64,000 bases of DNA from Eutreptiella sp. 'Long Island Sound 2002' (lineage: Eukaryota > Protista > Euglenida), in the NCBI GenBank assembly GCA_964036045.1, contig OZ038378.1, forward strand, positions 171,802,001 through 171,866,000, given 5' to 3'. The notes under the pieces were generated by a model that saw only the letters and a list, made by a program, of their open reading frames with translations, was not told the DNA's origin and searched no databases. This document shows, piece by piece, positions 2,463 through 37,831 of the stretch; the stretch's first letter is position 1, and each line of letters begins with the position of its first letter. The translations under genes were made by a program, and so were the position numbers.

Positions 2463-3630
2463 CAGCCGGAGTGCTGCCATCGTGTGTGGGTGACAGTGAC
2501 AGTCCCAGCCATAGACAGGGTGGCACAGACAACGACGCAGATGCAGGGCAGGGTAGCAGTGCAGGGCAGGGCAAGGCAGGGCAGGGGGGCACAGAAAATC
2601 AATTAATTGCACACACGCATGTGTCACACAAATGTGTGCATTGTATCCCAGCTCCGCAACGTTGACACCCCCAGCATTGATGCCCCCGACAACGCAATAT
2701 CGCAAGGTGTGCTGCCGTTGTGTGTGGGTGACAGCAACAGTCCCAATCACAAACAGGATGGCACAGACAGTAGTGCAGGGCAGGGCAGCAGTGCAGGGCA
2801 GGGCAGGGCAGGGCAGGGCAGGGCGGCACAGAAAATCAATTAAAAAACATGGCACTCACTGACAGCTGCGAAAGGTGACCCCCCCCCCCCGGCCCTCCAT
2901 CCTCAACGTTGCACACACTTTTGTGTCACACAGATGTGTGCAGTCCAGCCCAGCTCCGAAAAGTCGACACCCCCGACCGCGCAAATTCGCAAGGTGTGCC
3001 ACCGTTGTGTGCGGGTGACAGCGACAATCGCAGTCACAAACAGGATGGCACAGACAGCAGCGCAGGGCAGGGCAGCAGTGCAGGGCAGGGCAGCAGTGCA
3101 GGGCAGGGCAGGGCAGGGCACGGCGGCACAGAAAATCAATTAAAAAAACATGGCACTCACTGACTGTTGCGAAAGGTTAACCCCCCCCCCCCGGCCCTCC
3201 ATCCTCAGGGGGACAGTGACAGTCGCAGTCACAAACAGGGTGGCATAGACAACATTGCAAGGCAGGGAAGCAGTGCAGGGCAGGGCAAGGCAAGGCACGG
3301 CAGCACAGACAATGAATTAAAAAAGAACATGGCACTTACTGTTGGGACAGGTGAGGGTTCCCCCCCCGGCCCCTGGCCCGGCCCTGTATGCACACACTTC
3401 TGTGTCACACAGATGTGCGCAGTCCAACCGTACCTTCAAGACCTTCGTCCGAGAAGATGGACACCTAGGGCGGCGCAATTTCGCAAGGTGTGCCGCCGTA
3501 GGGTGTGGGTAACAGTGACAATCCCAGTCACAGACAATAAATTAAACGAAATACGGTGCGCCAGGCAGTCAGAGGGACTCAGACTCATGGACAAAAAAAA
3601 TTACACTCACTGTTCGCAGAGGTGACCCCC
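2463..3630 (+). repeat. Complex tandem repeat, about 4-5 diverged units of roughly 170-320 bp with internal (GCAGG)n arrays
   Basis: Recurrent blocks GGTGACAG..CACAAACAGGATGGCACAGAC..GCAGGGCAGGG..CACAGAAAATCAATTAA. Confidence 0.8.
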
Positions 3631-3933
3631 GCCCCCCCCTTGCCCCACTGTCCTGTGTGTGAGCGACACCAGGCGGCAGCGCAAGAAGCGAAAGCTCAGG
3701 AAAAGCAGGAACCCAGGACAGGGTCGATAATGACAGAACCTGTAGCCCCTGCATTGTGGTGCGGATATCTCAGAGGTTTCAAGCCCAACAATGCATGCAT
3801 GTCTGAAATCTGCGTTCTGACGCAGAGCTTTCCGTCACAAGAGCCGCGTCCTGCCGCGGCTTGCAGCAGCACACAGTAGCGATAACGAAGCAGCTGAACT
3901 CCGCGTCGTGTCGCGGAAGAGCATCCGGGCGTA

Positions 3934-4573
3934 ATGCCGCCGGGAAGGACAAGGCAGGAGAAGGGACCACGTCAGCAACGGCATGGCCCTTACACACATC
4001 CAGCCAGCCCCAAAGAAGGTCAAGCCTCAGCAAGAACGCCAACGTGTCAAGGTGCAAGCACTGAGCCAGCTAGACGCTATCGCGAATGAAGGACTGAGGG
4101 CAGTCGAATCAGAGCTGACCACAATGGCCTGGGCCCGCAATCAGCAGATGTGGCTCCGACTGGACCAACCACACAGCACCAGGATGCACTGTGAGATTGT
4201 AGACAATCACGGGGAACCATTGCTGATGAGCAATCAGGAGCTCTACTCGGTGATGGTCCAGATCAATTGGACCCTGAAGACTCAGGCTCTGGCGAACATG
4301 CAGGTCCAGTGGCGACCCAAAAGTGCAGGCACGTGGCATCCGTTCCAGTGGGAGGCGATCCTCCACTGTCCGACGGCAGAGGGACACAGAGCGGTGCCCT
4401 CATCTGTGCGCAGAACTGGAGACTGCATGCATGTGTGGCTGGCAGGCCGAGCGGACCTCTTGAGGCTGTTCCAGAGAACGCTCTTCAGGCAGGCGTACCT
4501 GGTACCCGGGGACGCTGTGCGGTTCCTCTACACGATGCTGAGCACACCCCAGTGCGAAAGGAGATATGCATGA
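3934..4573 (+). pseudogene. LINE accessory ORF3, copy A (2-nt deletion in a CA run near 3990)
   Basis: ATG CCG CCG GGA AGG at 3934 aligns with the ATG at 21556. TACACACATC here versus TACACACACATC in copy B shifts the frame. The remainder closely matches 21556-22197. Confidence 0.75.
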
Positions 4574-4631
4574 CAGGGGATGACACGCAGGGGGGAGTAG
4601 GACAGATTGGAGCAAGTGATGCAGATAACAA

Positions 4632-4735
4632 ATCGTCATAGCCCAGTGGATTAACCGCACCTCTTCTGTCCTGTAGAGGAGGGTTCGAACCCCGGGGGGG
4701 ATAGAGATCCACCGAACGTCCCGAAAACCCCTTTT
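4632..4735 (+). ncRNA. tRNA-derived Pol III cassette inside the LINE 3' region (copy A)
   Basis: A box TAGCCCAGTGG 4639-4649, B box GGTTCGAACCC 4682-4692, TTTT 4732-4735. CTGTCC resembles a tRNA-Asp anticodon loop but the stems are imperfect. Confidence 0.55.
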
Positions 4736-4738
4736 ATG

Positions 4739-4845
<107 letters not shown>

Positions 4846-5878: not shown

Positions 5879-6774
5879 TGTAGGAAGATGGGAGTATAGG
5901 AAGATAGGAGGAGGACCAAGGCTCGTTCCGGACCCCACCCGCACAGAACAGAAAAACAGGAAAATTTCGACGCGAACTAGCCTTCCGAGAACTGGTTACG
6001 ACTTTGCATCTTTGCTTTGTGGATGGGTTGTGTTTGCATGCTTGAGGAAGTAAGGGAATTAGCAGGTGCAAGGGACAACAACAAGCATCCAACAGCCAAC
6101 AAAAGCCTAGTTAACAATCCTGTGACAAAAAACAATTTACTAGAATCAGATTTATTGAACCCTAATCGGAACGTTTTTTTGCCGAACGTAAACCTTTTGG
6201 TCGAAAATCCTGTCACGAAAAACAAAAGCTGTGTACCCAAGCCAATGTATTTTCACTAGAATGAAAACCTTTTTACCAAAAGCAAAACCCACATACACAA
6301 ATGTTTTACCAAAATCCTTTTCCCAAAATGAAAACCTTTTTGCCAAAAATAAAACTGTTTTACCAAAACCAAAGCCATTTCACCAAAATGGAACCGCTTT
6401 TACTGAAACAACCTCTTACCCAGTTGCCAGTACCTAATAGCAAAGTCCTTTTAGCAGAATCAAAACCTATTTACCAAAATCAAAAAGTTTTCTCCAAAAT
6501 GAACAAAATTTAACTAATCGCAAAACCAAAGTCATAAAGTGTTTACCAAATCTTTTCACCAAATCCGTTTTTATAAAAAAAACGAAAAAAACAACCTTTT
6601 CACTCCTCGGCCCGCCAGCCCGCCGAGACCCCTGTCGGCGGGCGTGTACACAAGGCAGATTCTGGGGAAAACGACACGCAATTTTTGCAGGTAATTTTGA
6701 AAATATTGTAGGTAGATTTCCTGGTTTTAATGTACCCAAATATGTAGGATGAAGGACCAGCACCGCGGTAACAT

Positions 6775-7767
6775 GTGAGGATCTTCAATAGGCTATGGTG
6801 GTCTGGGACCCTGATGCACTTGTTTTGGGTCAAGTCAAAGATGATGCTGGCGGATGCCTTGTCCAAGTTGAGTGGGACCGACCCGACATCCATTACTCAG
6901 GCTACAATAGACGCTCTTTCTAAGTGGAGATCCCTCATGTCCAATATCCACCAGTTGACCCACATGGGCTCGGCCTGGGTCTGGGCACAAGTCAGCTCCT
7001 TACGGCAGCGCCTGGCCAGTACTGACCTCCGTGCCATAGCCTTTTTCATACATGCTCGTGTCTGCACACGTGAGCCGAGGCCTCTTGGTGTCATGCCCCC
7101 AAAGGGGCAAGATGAAAGGCCTAAGCCTCAACAGGAGAGACAGGGCTTCAAGGTGCTGGCCATACAACGCTTGGCGGAAGTGGAATAGGAGGCATTGGAG
7201 ACGGTGAGGCTGACACTTGAAGAGATCATCTGCATGCGAAATCAAAGAATATGGCTCCGACTACAAATCAACTTGGGAGTAAGAACGACGATGGAGGTGG
7301 TCACGACCAGAGGGGAACCACAGGTGATGCTGAAGCAGGAAATGTACTCGTTGCTCGTTAAGGTGATGTGGACTCTTAAACCGAGAGCATGCGAGAACAT
7401 GCTGGTAAGGTGGATCTGCAAAGACACACTTCACGACTTTGATTGGGAGGTCTCCCTGATTGTTCCCACCCGGGGAGGACGGAGGTAAGTTTCAGTTTCC
7501 ACCAGCCAAGCCACGGGGTCACACCACATCTGGTTTTCGGGAATGCCCAGCATCCTGCGCGTTTCGAACAAGTGCTGTTCCGATAGTTTGATCCAATTTC
7601 GGGCGATGCAAGTAGTCTATACGTATTTGATTACACCATGCAAGGGCAAGACCTACTCTATTGCGAGTGTTGTGGAGGACGAGAGTTGCATACTCCTGGG
7701 ATGTACTTTCCTCATGAGTCATGGGTCTCGGGCAGGATACATACCCGTGTCTTTACACGGGTACTGA
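6775..7767 (+). pseudogene. Fragment of a YR-type retroelement: RNase H C-terminus followed in frame by a diverged homologue of LINE ORF3
   Basis: LFWVKSKMMLADALSKL resembles the DIRS/Ngaro/VIPER RNase H end. From 7093, MPP..KPQQERQGFKV..RNQRIWLRL..GEP..QEMYS..TLK..NMLVRW..HDFDWE..HIWFSG aligns with 21556-22197. In-frame stops at 7186-7188 and 7486-7488. Confidence 0.6.
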
Positions 7768-8348
7768 AGCCCTTCGGTGTCATACCACCGAGGGTGTAGG
7801 GAGGTGACCTTCCCCACAGGCGCAGGTGGTCAGGTCTCTTAAGCTCAAGTCTGCACTCACCTACCTGCAGCGACACGGTCCCCGGTGGGGTGGGCGCGGC
7901 CAGTGATGGAGCACGTGCATGAGTTTGTGTTGTGCGTGTGAGACCGGAATCCAGAGAGGGAAATTGAGGGATTCACGGTGGGGAATCACTTGATTTGCCA
8001 TGCATGTCCATTCTGATTTCAGAATAATTTTATATTTCGGTGGTCGCTGCCCGCCCGCCAGCCCTACACGACGAGTTGTTTCCATACACTCACGGACACT
8101 CACACAATGCTGAACACATAGCCCACCAGCGGCCAGTGATGGAGCATGTGCCTGAGTTTTTGTTGTGCGTGTGAGACCAGAGTATACAGAGAGGGAAACC
8201 GGCTTGAAAGATACTATATGAACCGGGCGGCGTTCCCGCAATGTAGCATAGCACCCGTGAACTCACCGTCGCGGCTTCTGGACTATGTTTGCTGAAATTC
8301 AATGAGTGGGTACAAACTTGTTTGCGATGATTGGGTTGGGGGTGCATG

Positions 8349-17466: not shown

Positions 17467-17747
17467 TCACAGTTATTGTTGGGGTCCAAAATGGAGAGCA
17501 ATGATGTGGCAAAAGCAGCCATGAACGAAATTTGGGGGATCTTGTTCAGCCAAATCAACATGGCTAGCATGGCTGAACCAGCTCGTTGCAAAGGTTAGGG
17601 TTAGGTTTAGGGTGATGGTATGGTTAGAGGGAGGGCAAAGGGAGTTAAGGAGAGCTTGTGATGGACCAACGCTTGGCTTTGGGGGCATGTACCCCCCAAA
17701 TCGCCCCACCCGGACTGCCCCCCGGGCAAAAGCCCCCCCCCCCCCCA

Positions 17748-20700
17748 TTGTATCGGTTAATGCGGGAGTTGCAGGAGCGAAAGAAACTTCAACAGCTGGT
17801 ATCCAGGACAGGCTCGGCGATACGGGGGGCAAAGACGGTGGCAAAAGAGTTGGTGGACCATTGGGACAAAGTGTCCACACCGACGGGATCCACCGAAGAA
17901 GATTGTGTGGCCTATCTGAAGTCGTTAGGAGTGGAACAGCGGCTGCGCAAGGCAGGTCGACTTCTTTTCAAGCAACCATCCCTGGACATTGTTCATGAAG
18001 GCCTTAAGAGGCTGAACAGCAACAGCTCCCCTGGATTGGATGGTTTCTTGGCAAAATTCTTCAAGAGGTTCTCGGACATCTTCGAACCGCAAATGTATGA
18101 CTCAATGAAACATTTCCTCGAAGTGGGCAAAATGCCGGAGACATGGACCTCGGGAGTGGTGACAATGATTCCCAAGACGAAGGCGATGCAAACACCAGAT
18201 TCGCTCCGACCAATTGCACTGCAAACTACAAGGCAGAAGTGGCTCACCAACATCCTCCTGATCCAGTTAGAGGATGTACTTCTCCACTGTATCCCGTCAC
18301 AGCAAACAGGTTTCCTTCGACACAGAAGCATACTTCAGCATGTCTATGGGTCACGGGCACTCTGGGATGGCCTAAGTGAAGGAGCGGCGTTATCAGTGGA
18401 CTTCAGAAATGCCTTCCCCACGATGTCTCACGAGATGGTGTCGGCAGCTCTGGGTCTAATGTGCATACCATTCTTGTATATCCGTCTGATTCTACACCTT
18501 TTGCGAGCTCCGTATCTATACTCCGTTGGAAAAGGATACGTCCCAGGCGTATACCACCACCCGAGGGCAGGCACACGCCAGGGGGATCCACTCTCCCCTG
18601 CGCTGGTCTCCCTGGTGGCATCCTTTGTGATTTTCCCACTACAAGACCTGGGTCCAGTACTGACTGTCATGATGTATGCAGATGACCTCATCATTTTCTT
18701 TGATGGAAGAGCCAACCCACAGCTGTTGAAAAGGGTATGGGAAGTGGTTTCACGTTTCGGACAGTTTTCGGGGCTGAAGGTCAACCTGAATAAAACGGCA
18801 GCGATAGTTCGCAATTGTGGGGGAATGGAGTGGGCGAGGTGCTTTCGGGACATTGGAGTGGATGTCAAAAACTTCGTCAAGTATCTGGGTGTACGCTTGG
18901 GGAACATTCGGCACCAACAAGACGACCAAGGATGGGGGCTGACGATGGAGCAGGCCTTCGCACCAGCACTGCAAGAGGCCTTCCGTCGCGCAAGGGTGGT
19001 ATCCACGTTGCAACTGTCCATGAACGAACGAGCATTCATGCTGACATCATGGATTCTGCCGGTTGTGGCATGGGTATCCAAGGCATATTACGCCCCAGTC
19101 TCGGTGGTCGGACAACTGAAGTTGGTGTATCACGTGACTATGGGTACCAACAGCTGGGGAATCACCTTACCAATCCTCTCATGTCCAAGAACGCAAGGGG
19201 GACTGGCACTACCAGAACCAGAACTGTTTCTTATGCACCAGGCGGCGGCTCCGTTCGTCAGCCTGTTGGGAGACCCTCACAAATTCCCTGACAAGGCAGT
19301 GGAGACCTTCTATGCATGGGCAACAGCCATAGGGTTCACACCATCCAAGGACAACCTTCCATATATTCAACTGGGCATGGTCCGAACGGCCGATCTTACA
19401 TTTCTGGGATGGTCGGCGAAGGCACATTCCAACATTCAGCGAGTGGCCCCGCAGGTGGCCCCCCCGGCAAACCGGGACCGCCTGCCGTTGTGGCACTCTG
19501 TGTATTTCCGAAATGAGTTCCGCTGCTCCTACTACAACACGAAATTGATCCGGCAGGGGGTGCTGACGTGGGGTCAATTCCAAAGCTTGGAGGACGCAAG
19601 ATTGTTCAATGCACTGCCTCGGACATGGAAAGGGGTCTACAATCATGGCGGACGACTCCTCAACAAAGTCATGTCACAAGGGGGGTTTGATACCCCCGCA
19701 GTCCATACCCAAAACTGGACCAGGGCATGGCTGCTCCAGTTCTACGCCTCTCAGCCAGGGGTCCGCGACCCGCAAACACCGGAGGTATGGGTACAGCTGG
19801 CACAGGCACAGCTACCACCGAGGGCTCAAGACTTTGCGCGAAAGGCGCTGTGGCACAAACTGACCGTACATGCAAGAGTATACAAGAGGTCAGGCACTGA
19901 CAAGTGCCCGGTTTGCTCACAACAGGAGACGATCAAACACGCGATGGTCGAATGCCCCATGTTCAAAGCAGCAGCGGCGGTTATACAGCACTACTATGGC
20001 CAGGTGACAACTGATAACGGGACATCCACAGTTCGAGATATGATGGAGTCCGACGACCAAGAATGGTTGCTGAAAACGAACCAAGGCTGGGCGATGTGGT
20101 CAGCAAGAAGTGCCCACTGGCGATATCGATGCGAAGTCAGAAGGCAGGAGCGTCGCCGGTGTTCGTGTCATACCTTACAACATGGCTAAGGAAGCTATGT
20201 GAGTGGGTGGGATTTTACACAGGGGAGCACAGGGAACAATGGAAAGGATTTCAAAAATCGCTGGAACAACTTCGAGACACCGGAGTGCAGCCACGACAAG
20301 GGGAAGTGCAAGTACATGGGGGACTGAATGCGTGGTGGCAAACACACACGGAATGCTTCACCCAAGAAAAGTCAGCCGACAATCAAAGTTGGCAAAGGGC
20401 AACGGAGTCACGCCCGAAGCGCCCGAGGCAGGCAGGCCCGGGAGTGCTACAAGGAGTGCAAGAACTGATTGCAGAACTGGTGGAGCAGGGCTACAGGATA
20501 GTGTACAGTGATGGATCGTCGAAGCGACTGGGCCTCAAGGACATGCGCAGGGCCGGGGGATTTGGCGTGTTCGCGGCGGAAGACGACCAAGGACCAGAGG
20601 TGCGCTTCTGTGGCTACGTACCAACACATTACAGGCAAACAAACAACGGAGCAGAGCTTTGGGCAGCCGTGGAAGCCTTACAGGGTTTCTGGGTGCCAAA

Positions 20701-21319
20701 ACTGGCAATCCTCACCGACTCACAATACCTGCAGCTGGGAGCGACTGGCAGGGCCCAACACTGGAAGTCAAAGGGATGGACAACCACATCTGGAAAACTG
20801 CAAGTCCACGTCCCAGTCTGGGAAATGCTGCTCCAGGAAATGGCGACGCCGGGAAGAGAAGTCAGGTGGGAACATGTCCCAGCACATGTCAACGTGCAGG
20901 GAAATGAGATGGCGAATGGATTGGCCATGGAAGGCATGTGTTCAAGCCCACTGTGGTCACAGCATGTTGCACCAAAATCATCATCTGGGTCAGAGTCCAC
21001 GGTAGGTTTGAGGGGAGGGTGGGGATCAGAGTCAGAGGGCACAAGGGCACTCTGGTCGTCCCTGGGTATAGTACCCATGGACAGTGATGAACTGACAGGG
21101 GAAGCATCCGGGGAGCCAGCGCCACGTGGGATGGGACCGTACTCCTCAAGCAATACAGAAAGTGAGGAAATGAGACCAGGACACACACACCAGGGAGTGC
21201 TGTCGAGTGCACTGTCAGCAGCAGACACACTGTCCTTCAGCACTGATGTGAGTGACACCAGGCGACAGCGCAAGAAGCGAAGGCTCAGGAAACGCAGGAA
21301 CCCAGGACAGGGTCGATAA
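17748..21319 (+). pseudogene. LINE ORF2 remnant: reverse transcriptase + zf-RVT + ribonuclease H, one frameshift near 20145-20150
   Basis: RT motifs SSPGLDGF, RPIAL, VDFRNAF, GTRQGDPLSP, MYADD, GLKVNLNKT, KYLGV, GGLAL. Zinc finger CPVC..TIKHAMVEC. RNase H motifs YSDGSS, TNNGAEL, ILTDSQY, WKSKGW, HVPAH..GNEMANGLA. Confidence 0.92.
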
Positions 21320-21555
21320 TGCCAGAGCCAGAAGCCCTTGCACAATGGAACAGACATCCCACAGGCACCAAGCACAGCAATGCATGCCTGAAACACCTGT
21401 GTTCTGACGCAGAGTCTGCATCACATGAGCTGCGTTTTGTCGCAGTAGAGCTTGCAACACATGGGCTGCGTTCTGCCGCAGTGAGCAGCAGCACGCAAAG
21501 GAGCACGCCAAGCAGCTGAACGCCGCGTCCTGTCGCGGAAAGGCACCCAGGCGTT

Positions 21556-22197
21556 ATGCCGTCTGGGAGGACACAGCAGGAGAAGGGATCTCACCAGCAG
21601 CGGTATGGCCCATACACACACATCCAGCCAGCCCCAAAGAAGGTCAAGCCTCAGCAAGAACGCCAGCGTTTCAAGGTGCAAGCACTGAGTCAGCTGGACG
21701 CCATTGCGAACGAAGGACTGCAAGCAGTTGAAGCAGAACTGACCACAATGGCCTGGGCCCGCAATCAGCAGATCTGGCTCCGACTGGACCAACCACATGG
21801 CACCAGGATGCACTGTGAGATTGTGGACAACCATGGGGAACCACTGCAGATGAGCAATCAGGAGCTCTACTCGGTGATGGTCCAGATCAACCGGACCCTG
21901 AAGACCCAGGCTCTGGCGAACATGCAGGTCCAGTGGCGACCCAAAAGTGCAGGCATGTGGCACCCGTTCCAGTGGGAGGCGATCCTCCACTGTCCGACGG
22001 CAGAAGGACACAGAGCGGTGCCCTCCTCGGTAAGCAGAGTTGGCGATTGCATGCATGTGTGGCTGGCAGGCCGAGCGGACCTCTTGCGATTGTTCCAAAG
22101 AACGCTCTTCAGGCAGGCGGACCTGGTACCCGGGGACGCTGTGCGGTTCCTCTACACACTGCTGAACACACCCCCATGCGAAAGAAGATACGCATGA
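21556..22197 (+). CDS. LINE accessory ORF3, 213 aa, unknown function
   Basis: Intact ORF downstream of the RNase H ORF. Versus copy A, about 15 synonymous and 7 non-synonymous codon differences over ~99 codons (counted by hand). A diverged homologue lies at 7093-7767. Confidence 0.8.
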   Translation: MPSGRTQQEKGSHQQRYGPYTHIQPAPKKVKPQQERQRFKVQALSQLDAIANEGLQAVEAELTTMAWARNQQIWLRLDQPHGTRMHCEIVDNHGEPLQMSNQELYSVMVQINRTLKTQALANMQVQWRPKSAGMWHPFQWEAILHCPTAEGHRAVPSSVSRVGDCMHVWLAGRADLLRLFQRTLFRQADLVPGDAVRFLYTLLNTPPCERRYA

Positions 22198-22257
22198 CAG
22201 GGGGTGATAAAAAGGAGAAGAAGAGAGGAGCGCATGGTGCCATGGTGCAGATAACCC

Positions 22258-22363
22258 ATCGTCGTGGCCCAGTGGATACACCACACCTCTTCTGTCCCGT
22301 GGAGGATGGTTCGAACCCCGGGGGGGATAGAGATGCACCGAACAACCCGAACCCCCCTTTTTT
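22258..22363 (+). ncRNA. tRNA-derived Pol III cassette inside the LINE 3' region (copy B)
   Basis: A box TGGCCCAGTGG 22265-22275, B box GGTTCGAACCC 22308-22318, T6 at 22358-22363. Confidence 0.6.
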
Positions 22364-23909
22364 GGGCGCGAGAGGGAGGGCGCGAGAGAGAGGGAGAGAG
22401 AAACAGAGAGAGAGAGAGAGAGAGAGAGGGTAGAGCGCAGTGGGAAAGGAACAGAGAGGTGCAACAGGAGAGAAAGAGAAGGGGAGAGCAAGAGAGAATG
22501 GAAGGGAGAGAGTAGGAGAGAGACCCACAGAGCGAGAGACCGGGGCTAACCGGCGCAAAGGGAGGTGGTGGGTTCGAGCTGACCAGGGTTCGAGCTGATC
22601 AGGGTGGGTTCGAGCTGACCAAGGTAAAAGGGACGCCACGGCGGCACGGAACAGCCGAGAAATGTCAAGAAATGAAAAAGCAGGGCGCCGTAGCGCCCCT
22701 GAGCCACTGGCTCGACACGTTGTCACGTGTTGAACAGCCGAAGCAAGACTGGGGCGGCGAGAGTGCGGCCCAAGTGAGGATGACGGAAGCAAGTAGGCAT
22801 GAATGTGTAGGCGGCATGCGCATGCATGGTGGGGAGCTGAAAAGGTATGCGCCACACGCCACACAGCGATGATTTGTTGAATTGCCTGACAGACGGAGCA
22901 CATACCGAGACGCCTTTGCGCCATCCAAGGCGCCATTGCGCCCCTGAGGATTGAGTATGACACGTCCTCACGAGCCAGAATGCAAGTGCATGACAGGGTC
23001 ACGACCTGCAGGGCAAGGGTTAGAGACTAAGCGGCACTGTGGGTGGGTGGTGGGTGCGAGCTGACCTAAATGTCCAGAGGACCAGTGCCTATGCACAGTC
23101 AGCAACCACCTGGTGTGGTACAGAACTGGTCTACGCTGCAGTGCAGCAAGCAAAACACTGAACAATGTGGTTATGACCATGCGCCTGTGACACGGGGGCG
23201 TATGCGAGCCCAGTTTCCGTTGCCTCATGGCCCCCCACCATCGCCCCTCCTCCCAAGGGGGCCTCCGGCCAACAGTTAATTGTGGGGGTAGTTGGCGTCC
23301 AGGACCGAGGAGTCGCCCCCCCCCCCCTGGAGTATAAGCCAGTGGTACAATGAAGGTAAGTTGTTTTGGCCAACAAAACACAGCCTAGTGAGCTGACCAT
23401 GAATGAACTACACAAATGAAACGGGTGCCACACGCTGAAGCATACATGCGCACATCCCATGTGTGGCACTACCAGCACACACACCCTGTATACACTGCGA
23501 TTGATGTTGTAGATGCTCGTTCCCTGAACAACATGCACATAACCTCCACACTGATCGATTGCCTGATAGCCGTGGCAGACCGCCTGCGCTACTGCGTGAA
23601 GGGTCAGCACATGTTATGCCAGCACAATGCATGGACCTCTGGTCTGCTCAGTTTCTGAGTACACCTGTGCTGCACATAAATGGACCTTCAGCTTTCCGGA
23701 GTTCTCCCGAGTACACTCAATGGAACCTTGAGCGTCAAGAACTCAAAAAAAAAAAAAGAATAAACTACACAAATGAAGGAGACTGTACATGTGTTCTTGT
23801 GCATGAGTAGTCAGACACAAATGCATGGTGGTGCTCCAGGGAGAACATATGGATCTGCATATGTGGAGTGCTCTGTGATCTGCTGTCTGCCTTTTACGTA
23901 CCACCATGC

Positions 23910-36506: not shown

Positions 36507-37831
36507 TTGGCAGGTTGGTTGGCCAAGACCTCAAGCTACAACGGTCAGACGGGCTTGCCATGCGTAGACAAGGCAATGCTGGCGCAGTGGAGATGGGATG
36601 CTGATGCACAGATGCAATGGTCCCCTGGTCGCCAAGTCAGACGTGGTCAAGAGGAGCTGGATTTTACTAAGTTGGACACAAGGGGGCACACTCAGCGCAG
36701 TGCAACTATTTGGGCGTCCGGCCGTACTAGAGACCCATACTTTGAGATACTAGGGGCTATGGGGCATCATGGTGACCCCTAGCGGAGGTTTTGACTTCTG
36801 AATTTGTCCCCCTTCTTCGCAACCCAAACCACTTGCCAAGAAAACTAAGAGAAGGAAGCACCCCGATAAACCTCGGACATTCACCGAGGAGGAGGTGGCA
36901 AAGATGAACAAACAAACGGAAGATAAGATTCTTGAGATGTTGCTCCATGTACATGAGAAAAGCATTGGGGCGCACCCCCTTGACCCTCAAGCAGATGGTG
37001 TTCAATGGTGGATTAAGCGTTGCGGCGGATCTCGGTCGATGAGACTGCAGATTAGTTATATGGGTCTTGATGCCTACTCTGCCGAGGAGTTTTGGCTGAA
37101 GTATGGGCACGAGGACATACTTCCGCGCAAGCATTTGTTCCGCTTCTTTTTCTTCTTCTTTTTTCATCCTTTGTGATGTCCTCTTCAATGTGAATTATGC
37201 GGGTTGCATATGTAAGGTAACGGTTGCCATTGACAGTCTTGGCAACATTGTATGGATTTGTCCGTTGGCCCCACGGACATCGGCGGATGTTCTCATTTGG
37301 GATCACGAGGGGCCCAAAAGGGTGAAGGGACATTACATGGATTATGAGATTGGCTCCATGGATGGTGCATACAAGGGGCGCCTCCATGTGGTATGGCCCT
37401 CTATCGGTCGAAAGACTTTGACGGAGCGCCAAAAGGAATACAACGATGTGCATGGTTTCTATAGGGCACGGATTGAGCACTTGTTTGCACGCATGTGGCA
37501 TTGGGGCATTGTAAGGAACATATGGAGGGGATCCGGTACTGATTTGCATGAGTACGTGCGTGTACTCTTGCATTTGCAGCAATTTTTGATTCGAAGACAA
37601 GTACGGTACCCTCCATATGGTCCATGGGAACATGTACCCGCACATGTATGGACCGCACCTACACAGGAGGACAATGATGATGAGGATGTTGTGGGTGACA
37701 ATGGGGATGTATGTGCCCTTTGTTGCACCAAGTCTGACCCTCAGAAGATGTCCATGTGTGAAAAGTGTCAGTTGCAATATTGTACAGATTGCATTGACAC
37801 GCATACATGTGACAATGTCACGGTGCTTTAA
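36507..37831 (+). pseudogene. PIF/Harbinger(ISL2EU)-like DDE transposase with C-terminal Cys-rich finger, fragmented, within an intron of gene X
   Basis: KVTVAIDSLGNIVWI..SAD..MDGAY..YNDVHGFYRARIEHLFARM matches the DDE_Tnp_4 pattern. The C-terminus is CALC..CEKC..CTDC..HTC. The upstream part is in other frames. Confidence 0.75.

Follow-up and report, generated by a model that had tools for sequence, protein, structure and literature searches.

Can one accessory gene belong to two unrelated kinds of retroelement within the same genome? The question is raised by a 64-kb stretch of euglenid DNA (the window, 64,000 nucleotides), in which ORF3 of a young, abundant LINE (213 codons, 21556 to 22197) has an apparent relative at 6775 to 7767, behind the RNase H of a different element; these and the other mapped parts of the two elements lie on the forward strand. 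The preliminary description read the pair as an accessory gene shared or swapped between a non-LTR lineage and a tyrosine-recombinase (YR) or LTR-type lineage.

The sequence blocks on which that reading was founded are all present, in order. The RNase H block WVKSKMMLADALSK occupies 6826 to 6867, and the MPP start at 7093 is followed by KPQQERQGFKV, RNQRIWLRL, GEPQVMLKQEMYS, TLKPRACENMLVRW, HDFDWE, and HIWFSG. The extent originally given proved too generous at its 3′ end, as homology to the LINE gene runs to about 7659 and is absent from there to 7767. The frame at 7195 to 7488 matches LINE ORF3 with 41% identity (BLASTP, E = 5e-22), the whole LINE ORF3 aligns to the window at 38.8% identity over 183 residues (tblastn, 7123 to 7659, E = 2.5e-32), and an intact copy of the YR gene elsewhere (L005) matches LINE ORF3 at E = 8e-42. 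Identity between YR and LINE proteins is 38 to 41%, with no gaps through the core and an alignment that reaches the stop codon in both. The intact YR gene (L005:1810-2388) begins with MPPKG and ends in CIRQYA-stop; LINE copies begin with MPS or MPP and end in CERRYA-stop. The two are thus members of one family, colinear from KPQQERQ to the C-terminal YA-stop by way of the RNQxxW, GEP, QE.YS, W.LK, WE, and H.W..G blocks. At the DNA level, the LINE and YR 3′ regions resemble each other only in intragenic patches of some 34 nt, and the sharing is therefore old.

The window copy (6778 to 8198) belongs to a retrotransposon that measures about 5.8 kb when whole. It is decayed and, being truncated on the 5′ side, retains only the last 1.4 kb: the RNase H terminus, a conserved spacer, an ORF3-like pseudogene, and terminal repeats in the order B1-A2-B2. 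The cut lies at about 6768 to 6778; the DNA upstream of 6768 is unrelated, matching no other copy of the element, and no further part of the YR element was found in the rest of the 64-kb window. Directly 5′ of the fragment, at 6000 to 6600, is an AT-rich degenerate repeat array (aaaacc/ttttaccaaaa units). The 68 C-terminal RNase H codons that close pol (6778 to 6981) are 75% identical to residues 109 to 176 of the RNase H ORF of copy L041 (tblastn). The pol stop site (6982 to 6984) reads TGG here and is TGA in the other five of six copies aligned at the DNA level. In the spacer between pol and ORF3 (6985 to 7092), the last 55 or so bases before the ATG (7040 to 7092), including a CACACGTG motif, hardly vary across the aligned set of six (the window copy, L005, L009, L003, L014, and L008); they may act as an internal promoter, as a splice-acceptor region, or as a translation signal.

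The pseudogene, which corresponds to the fourth gene of the element, spans 7093 to 7659; its intact counterpart, L005:1810-2388, has 193 codons. In-frame stops interrupt it at 7186 to 7188 and 7486 to 7488, a shifted patch at about 7561 to 7613 contains one further stop, and the terminal stop is lost. The frames 6775 to 7188 and 7195 to 7488 are pieces of the same reading frame divided by an in-frame TAG, the first translating as ...RIFNRLWWSGTLMHLFWVKSKMMLADALSKL... and then MPPKGQDERPKPQQERQGFKV, and the second carrying the blocks RNQRIWLRL, GEPQVMLKQEMYS, TLKPRACENMLVRW, and HDFDWE. Beyond the gene lies a 3′ untranslated unit, R1 (7660 to 7895), which is single in the window and a tandem duplicate of about 290 bp in several other copies, as seen in self-comparisons of L035, L036, L038, and L040 and in second genome matches of query positions 903 to 1116. 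In L040 and L008, the C-terminal part of ORF3 is itself repeated by another duplication, about 320 bp long and 95% identical. The fragment closes with B1 (7896 to 7964), which matches both B copies of L031, A2 (7965 to 8128), whose partner A1 is the 5′ end of full copies, and B2 (8129 to 8198), the 3′ end of the element, where the similarity of many copies stops. B1 and B2 of the window copy agree at 63 of 70 positions (90%).

Searching the 2.28-Gb genome with positions 6778 to 7860 returned at least 61 matches (70 to 89% identity), at least 16 of them covering the RNase H end as well as ORF3. The structure of the element was read, in its own sense, from 10 kb around each of eight minus-strand copies. 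Fuller copies read A1, a gag-like ORF, a tyrosine recombinase, RT/RNase H, ORF3, and B1-A2-B2, with ORFs visible in L031, L038, L041, and L042. The order gag-like, recombinase, RT/RNase H is found in L042, L032, L051, and L045, and three copies (L042, L032, and L039) remain colinear from A1 to the RT by way of gag and recombinase. In all three the element opens at the same base with A1, matched over about 98 bp. More than 15 copies show the 3′ set, with a B1 and a B2 of 69 bp apiece on either side of an A2 of about 168 bp, and a portion of A2 is found again upstream of gag in L042, L040, L008, L030, L032, and L039. The YR-type copies seen are all old (70 to 89% DNA identity); a few remain open and most are broken. 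The RT is recognized by Pfam (RVT_1, E = 9e-7), and the RNase H of the copies ends in WVKSEMMPADALSRL ... HMGSARV-stop. Word-based searching with the RT gave five matches, all from ENA and unnamed, and thus no classification.

The host element had been proposed as a tyrosine-recombinase (or LTR-type) retroelement from the style of its RNase H terminus, and the full-length relatives bear out the former: they carry a gag-like ORF, a recombinase ORF, an RT and RNase H apparently of LTR/DIRS type, and split direct repeats and are not LINEs. The recombinase ORF of the fetched copies, which follows the gag-like ORF, reads GLRVGEMAGIKV ... RWHGWHRL ... AWCGWRSTQTAEGY and contains the motifs RxxE, HxxR, and W-x8-Y, the versions GLRVGE, RWHGWHR, and W-x8-Y being kept across three families. 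The predicted protein accordingly has the catalytic residues that define YR retrotransposons (order DIRS in the wide sense), and we take the spacing of these motifs to resemble that of Cre. Among the clusters nearest to it in the Atlas (score 0.98), 20 of 30 have Phage_integrase. The Pfam Phage_integrase model itself matched the HxxR-W-Y region weakly and below its cut-off (positions 108 to 167 of 172, E = 0.015), a profile of the ORF found nothing at E up to 1 among sequences of solved structures, and an AlphaFold model (L042 ORF, four sequences) had a pLDDT of 39, too low for use. Between A1 and B2, no integrase or endonuclease ORF was found in L042, L041, or L032. Two other YR groups were considered and rejected. 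Ngaro elements have the recombinase after pol, and here it precedes the RT. DIRS1 and PAT elements carry a methyltransferase domain after the RNase H and repeats of other kinds (in DIRS1, inverted terminal repeats and an internal complementary region); here the gap from the pol stop to ORF3 is only some 110 nt, Pfam recognizes nothing in ORF3, and the split repeats run in direct orientation.

The junction between RNase H and ORF3 is likewise not peculiar to this locus, recurring at no fewer than 16 loci spread over many chromosomes as well as in a further subfamily of the same gene order (L051), whose proteins are 49% (recombinase), 38 to 76% (RT), 50 to 63% (RNase H), and 52% (ORF3) identical to those of the first. 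The preliminary description had named two findings that would speak against sharing, namely, full-length relatives that are LINEs and a junction found once only, as from a chance nested insertion. Because the relatives are not LINEs and the junction is recurrent, neither holds.

On the LINE side, the window copy lacks its 5′ part and retains ORFs for RT (17658 to 20189) and RNase H (20063 to 21319), together spanning 17658 to 21319, with Pfam matches to RVT_1 (E = 7e-23), zf-RVT (E = 2e-7), and RNase_H (E = 3e-22). No endonuclease of this LINE was found within the 64-kb window; the full LINE carries one of AP type (P0086; Exo_endo_phos, E = 5e-4), and the ORFs upstream of it may form ORF1. A first look at the genome gave more than 2,400 candidates for LINE ORF3, the best 150 of which are 94 to 100% identical and mostly have an open 225-codon frame. 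LINE copies are mostly 5′ truncated, and fragments with little beyond ORF3 and the tail are common. One such fragment of 1.2 kb lies in the window itself (3658 to 4830) and consists almost only of ORF3 (3983 to 4573) and the tail; it is 83% identical in DNA to 21247 to 22458 and 93% identical in ORF3 protein, indicating that LINE truncation yields ORF3-only pieces. The spacer between LINE RNase H and ORF3 contains, at 21395 to 21480, two similar hairpin-forming units (ctgcg-N6-cgcag). Elsewhere in the window, a 242-codon ORF (37103 to 37831) with ...HGFYRARIEHLFARMWHWGIVRN... and a cysteine-rich tail at its end is a putative PIF/Harbinger-type transposase by the look of its sequence.

We searched 1.84 billion representative proteins exhaustively with a profile of both ORF3 types and obtained 123 representative clusters, with matches to genes behind LINE pol as well as behind YR pol; those looked up were all from ENA, and every contig fetched belonged to one euglenid assembly (ERZ25074135). 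Word-based protein searching with LINE ORF3 returned LINE-type copies only, again all from ENA. Pfam assigned no family to either ORF3 type, and an Atlas feature search gave no relatives (best score, a meaningless 0.78). In L044, L047, L048, L050, and L052, ORF3 comes after the RNase H or RT of a LINE, and these contexts represent at least five LINE lineages. L044 is a LINE of the window type with ORF3, L047 and L052 have RNase H 38% identical to that of the window LINE, and L048 has an RT 32 to 38% identical to it with a Pfam RNase_H gene upstream. Four additional ORF3 lineages (L046, L049, L054, and L055) are seen in fragments that lack an upstream pol and so give no information on their carriers. 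The LINE at L050:4043-7591 resembles the window LINE closely in RT (44 to 64% identity) and RNase H (50%) but only at about 27% in ORF3, which falls on the far side of the deepest split in the family. The histories of ORF3 and pol thus disagree among LINEs too, which suggests that the gene moves or changes fast there.

A more distant YR family (L045:1-3186; 30 to 38% identical) has an intact recombinase ORF of 488 codons (160 to 1623), and its one copy has no ORF3 homologue after the RNase H. In that place stands a different ORF of 149 codons (3337 to 3783) without Pfam match; it was ruled out as a relative of ORF3, since alignment to the ORF3 family with hhalign gave a probability of 0.2%. 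The unrooted ORF3 tree has two clades (support 100/100) with LINE-borne genes in both, and the YR genes form one group (94/70) within clade II. Because the tree is unrooted and clade II is not resolved, the donor cannot be read from it.

From the distribution of carriers, we infer that the YR lineage probably took ORF3 from a LINE: the gene occurs in five LINE lineages across the deepest split of the family versus only two fairly close YR subfamilies, and the more distant YR family is without it. By the simplest route, a 5′-truncated LINE would have inserted between pol and the 3′ repeats, ahead of B1, giving the four-gene layout of the YR element; template switching during reverse transcription would be an alternative. 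The opposite course, with an origin of ORF3 in YR retrotransposons and one or more later transfers to LINEs, is allowed by an unrooted tree that can be rooted on the YR branch and agrees with the way ORF3 similarity among LINEs is out of step with RT similarity at L050. We consider it unlikely, however, given that the LINE lineages on the two sides of the 100/100 split number at least five and have RT identities down to 32%.

That there is a separate gene to transfer can itself be questioned, in that the YR ORF3 might be a C-terminal extension of pol reached by readthrough of a single TGA. Two copies, that of the window and L009, have the ORF3 ATG in frame with the stop site at a distance of 108 nt, and the spacer is highly conserved. 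Across the six aligned copies, however, the spacer ranges from 106 to 109 nt (in a family 70 to 89% identical in DNA to the window copy), so that no fixed frame relation between ORF3 and pol can be read; the MPP/MPS start is conserved in both kinds of element; and in the LINE, ORF3 lies 237 nt past the RNase H stop in another frame with stops in between. An extension of pol is therefore quite improbable.

If ORF3 is a gene in its own right, LINEs and YR elements might each have captured it from the host, as retroelements elsewhere capture host genes and as an unresolved direction of transfer would permit. Against independent capture, the family comprises only 123 clusters among the 1.84 billion representatives, no context examined is a stand-alone host gene, all being retroelements or isolated fragments, and the position directly after RNase H is the same in both kinds of element. 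We regard such a double origin as very unlikely.

The remaining matter is whether ORF3, once acquired from a LINE as we favor, does anything for the YR element. The gene is enclosed by the terminal repeats and has a conserved MPP start about 110 nt past a pol stop that is retained as TGA in five of six copies. Between L005 and L009, ORF3 has a dS of 0.87 and a dN/dS of 0.15 (bootstrap, 0.08 to 0.24), and RNase H has a dS of 0.85 and a dN/dS of 0.20 (0.13 to 0.31); the matching dS and similar dN/dS indicate that in this lineage ORF3 equals pol both in age and in constraint. Among copies generally, ORF3 dN/dS is 0.15 to 0.22 at dS of 0.5 to 0.9. A LINE 3′ fragment that landed in a YR element and was copied along without serving it would leave the same architecture, this being the outcome of a nested insertion by a 5′-truncated LINE like the common fragments exemplified at 3658 to 4830, and the YR copies are indeed mostly broken, but constraint equal to that on the adjoining RNase H, a start, stop, and full colinearity kept in two subfamilies about 50% apart in protein, and the lack of any trace of a LINE 3′ UTR or (GA)n tail make such a passenger very unlikely.

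We conclude that the fourth gene of the YR element very probably shares a protein family with the ORF3 behind LINE RNase H and is a working part of the element, because it sits inside the repeats, has its own MPP start, shares the YA-stop, codiverges with pol, and is under purifying selection. Recurrence and selection together exclude nested-insertion artifacts. The claim of one accessory gene common to non-LTR and YR lineages is thereby sustained by ORF3 homology, a recurrent junction, and purifying selection; for the further suggestion that its function is useful to unrelated retroelements, the one support is that selection keeps the gene.

Short contigs from public sequencing runs (four runs from two studies under two species labels, of unrecorded kind) cover L005 from the RNase H end through the spacer and ORF3 with 0 to 1 differences. 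These four are the public runs that contain intact L005, and none is identified as an RNA run. In the run under the second species label (X2, organism B), contigs tile L005 positions 1539 to 2583, also with 0 to 1 differences; either this is the same strain under another name or the old insertion is shared.

Both ORF3 proteins are basic (pI 9.5 and 10.5). The predicted structure (mean pLDDT, 66.8; pTM, 0.58) comprises a disordered, basic lysine/arginine-rich N terminus, a helix at residues 32 to 66, and a beta-alpha-beta4-alpha domain at residues 70 to 201. In an exhaustive structural comparison, KA1-type domains came first, taking 14 of the 36 best rows at a level that unrelated models also reach. 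Residues 73 to 200 superpose on the KA1 domains of SAD/MARK/Chk1 kinases, the METTL16 VCR, and TUT1 over 84 to 95 residues (rmsd, 2.7 to 3.0; Z, 8.7 to 7.3). The top match, to SAD-B, has a Z of 8.7 and an rmsd of 2.8 over 94 residues, a score no higher than that of unrelated models, and is followed by METTL16 VCR (7.6), Chk1 (7.3), and then AMPK, TUT1, and Kcc4. A Foldseek search of the PDB with the same model did not find KA1 domains (best E, 9e-3; TM below 0.3), and an Atlas fold search (TM at most 0.43) gave no fold assignment. KA1 domains bind acidic lipids or structured RNA, and a basic protein such as ORF3 would suit either ligand; the likeness is a lead only, as ORF3 has no sequence similarity to KA1 domains.

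Were the lead to hold, the ORF3 protein would bind an anionic surface, either the RNA of the element or acidic membranes, and so help the ribonucleoprotein form or reach its place. Such a role as an RNA or acidic-membrane binder is possible but less likely than not. A lipid-binding role has earlier been proposed for LINE ORF1 proteins (PMC3905857). A binder of this kind would offer a service useful to any retroelement, whatever its mode of integration. More tentative still is the wider idea that ORF3 is a portable accessory, a small basic RNA or acidic-membrane binder encoded as a self-contained 3′ cistron that any retroelement could use. Euglenid gene expression, for example, spliced-leader trans-splicing of polycistronic RNA, would let any retroelement use a 3′ cistron, and portability, if true, would explain the horizontal spread of the gene among LINE lineages and into recombinase retrotransposons.

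Among described elements, the YR element is most readily compared with VIPER and TATE, kinetoplastid tyrosine-recombinase retrotransposons with the order gag/recombinase/RT-RNase H and split direct repeats (PMC6681497). It shares with them the order of gag-like ORF, recombinase, and RT/RNase H, the arrangement A1 ... B1-A2-B2, and a host within Euglenozoa, and domain libraries recognize the recombinase weakly in both cases, only weak domain scores having been reported for VIPER recombinases (PMC6681497). It differs in its host, a euglenid rather than a kinetoplastid, and in its gene number: VIPER and TATE have three ORFs, whereas the element described here has a fourth gene, under selection, between pol and B1. 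The likeness is one of layout.

Gene sharing between retroelement classes is itself already known from bdelloid rotifers, in which post-pol ORFs are common to LTR, Penelope-like, and LINE elements (Rodriguez, Kenefick and Arkhipova 2017, PMC5408684), a pattern read there as modular gene sharing. The common feature is one type of accessory ORF after pol in retroelements of different classes. The bdelloid genes, however, encode known enzyme folds (GDSL esterase and DEDDy exonuclease) and link LTR elements, Penelope-like Athena, and LINE ORF1, whereas ORF3 is an orphan without known domain that links LINEs and YR elements. Accessory modules also move between retroelement classes in the case of adenine methyltransferase domains, which are exchanged among DIRS-like and LTR elements (bioRxiv 10.64898/2026.05.21.726589), but that module sits inside pol and has other partner classes, unlike the LINE/YR gene after pol described here. 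The same study suspects that domains are still being transferred between retroelements in Euglena gracilis, where nested insertions or assembly artifacts could not be excluded. What is new in the present case is the orphan gene, the pairing of LINE and YR elements, selection in both hosts, and a four-gene element of VIPER/TATE type in a euglenid.

Euglenid genomes are 2-Gb genomes of which more than half is repeats (PMC11252322). For such genomes, ORF3 provides a clean case of between-class gene sharing, free of nested-insertion and assembly artifacts, and its YR carrier adds to the VIPER/TATE type a four-gene form from outside kinetoplastids. Insertion proceeds by target-primed reverse transcription in LINEs and by means of a recombinase acting on a DNA intermediate in YR elements. 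Since these modes of insertion differ and selection keeps ORF3 in both kinds of element, the gene must serve a step that they share, for which RNA handling, particle assembly, transport, and escape from host silencing are candidates. ORF3 is in this sense a handle on a common requirement of euglenid retrotransposition.
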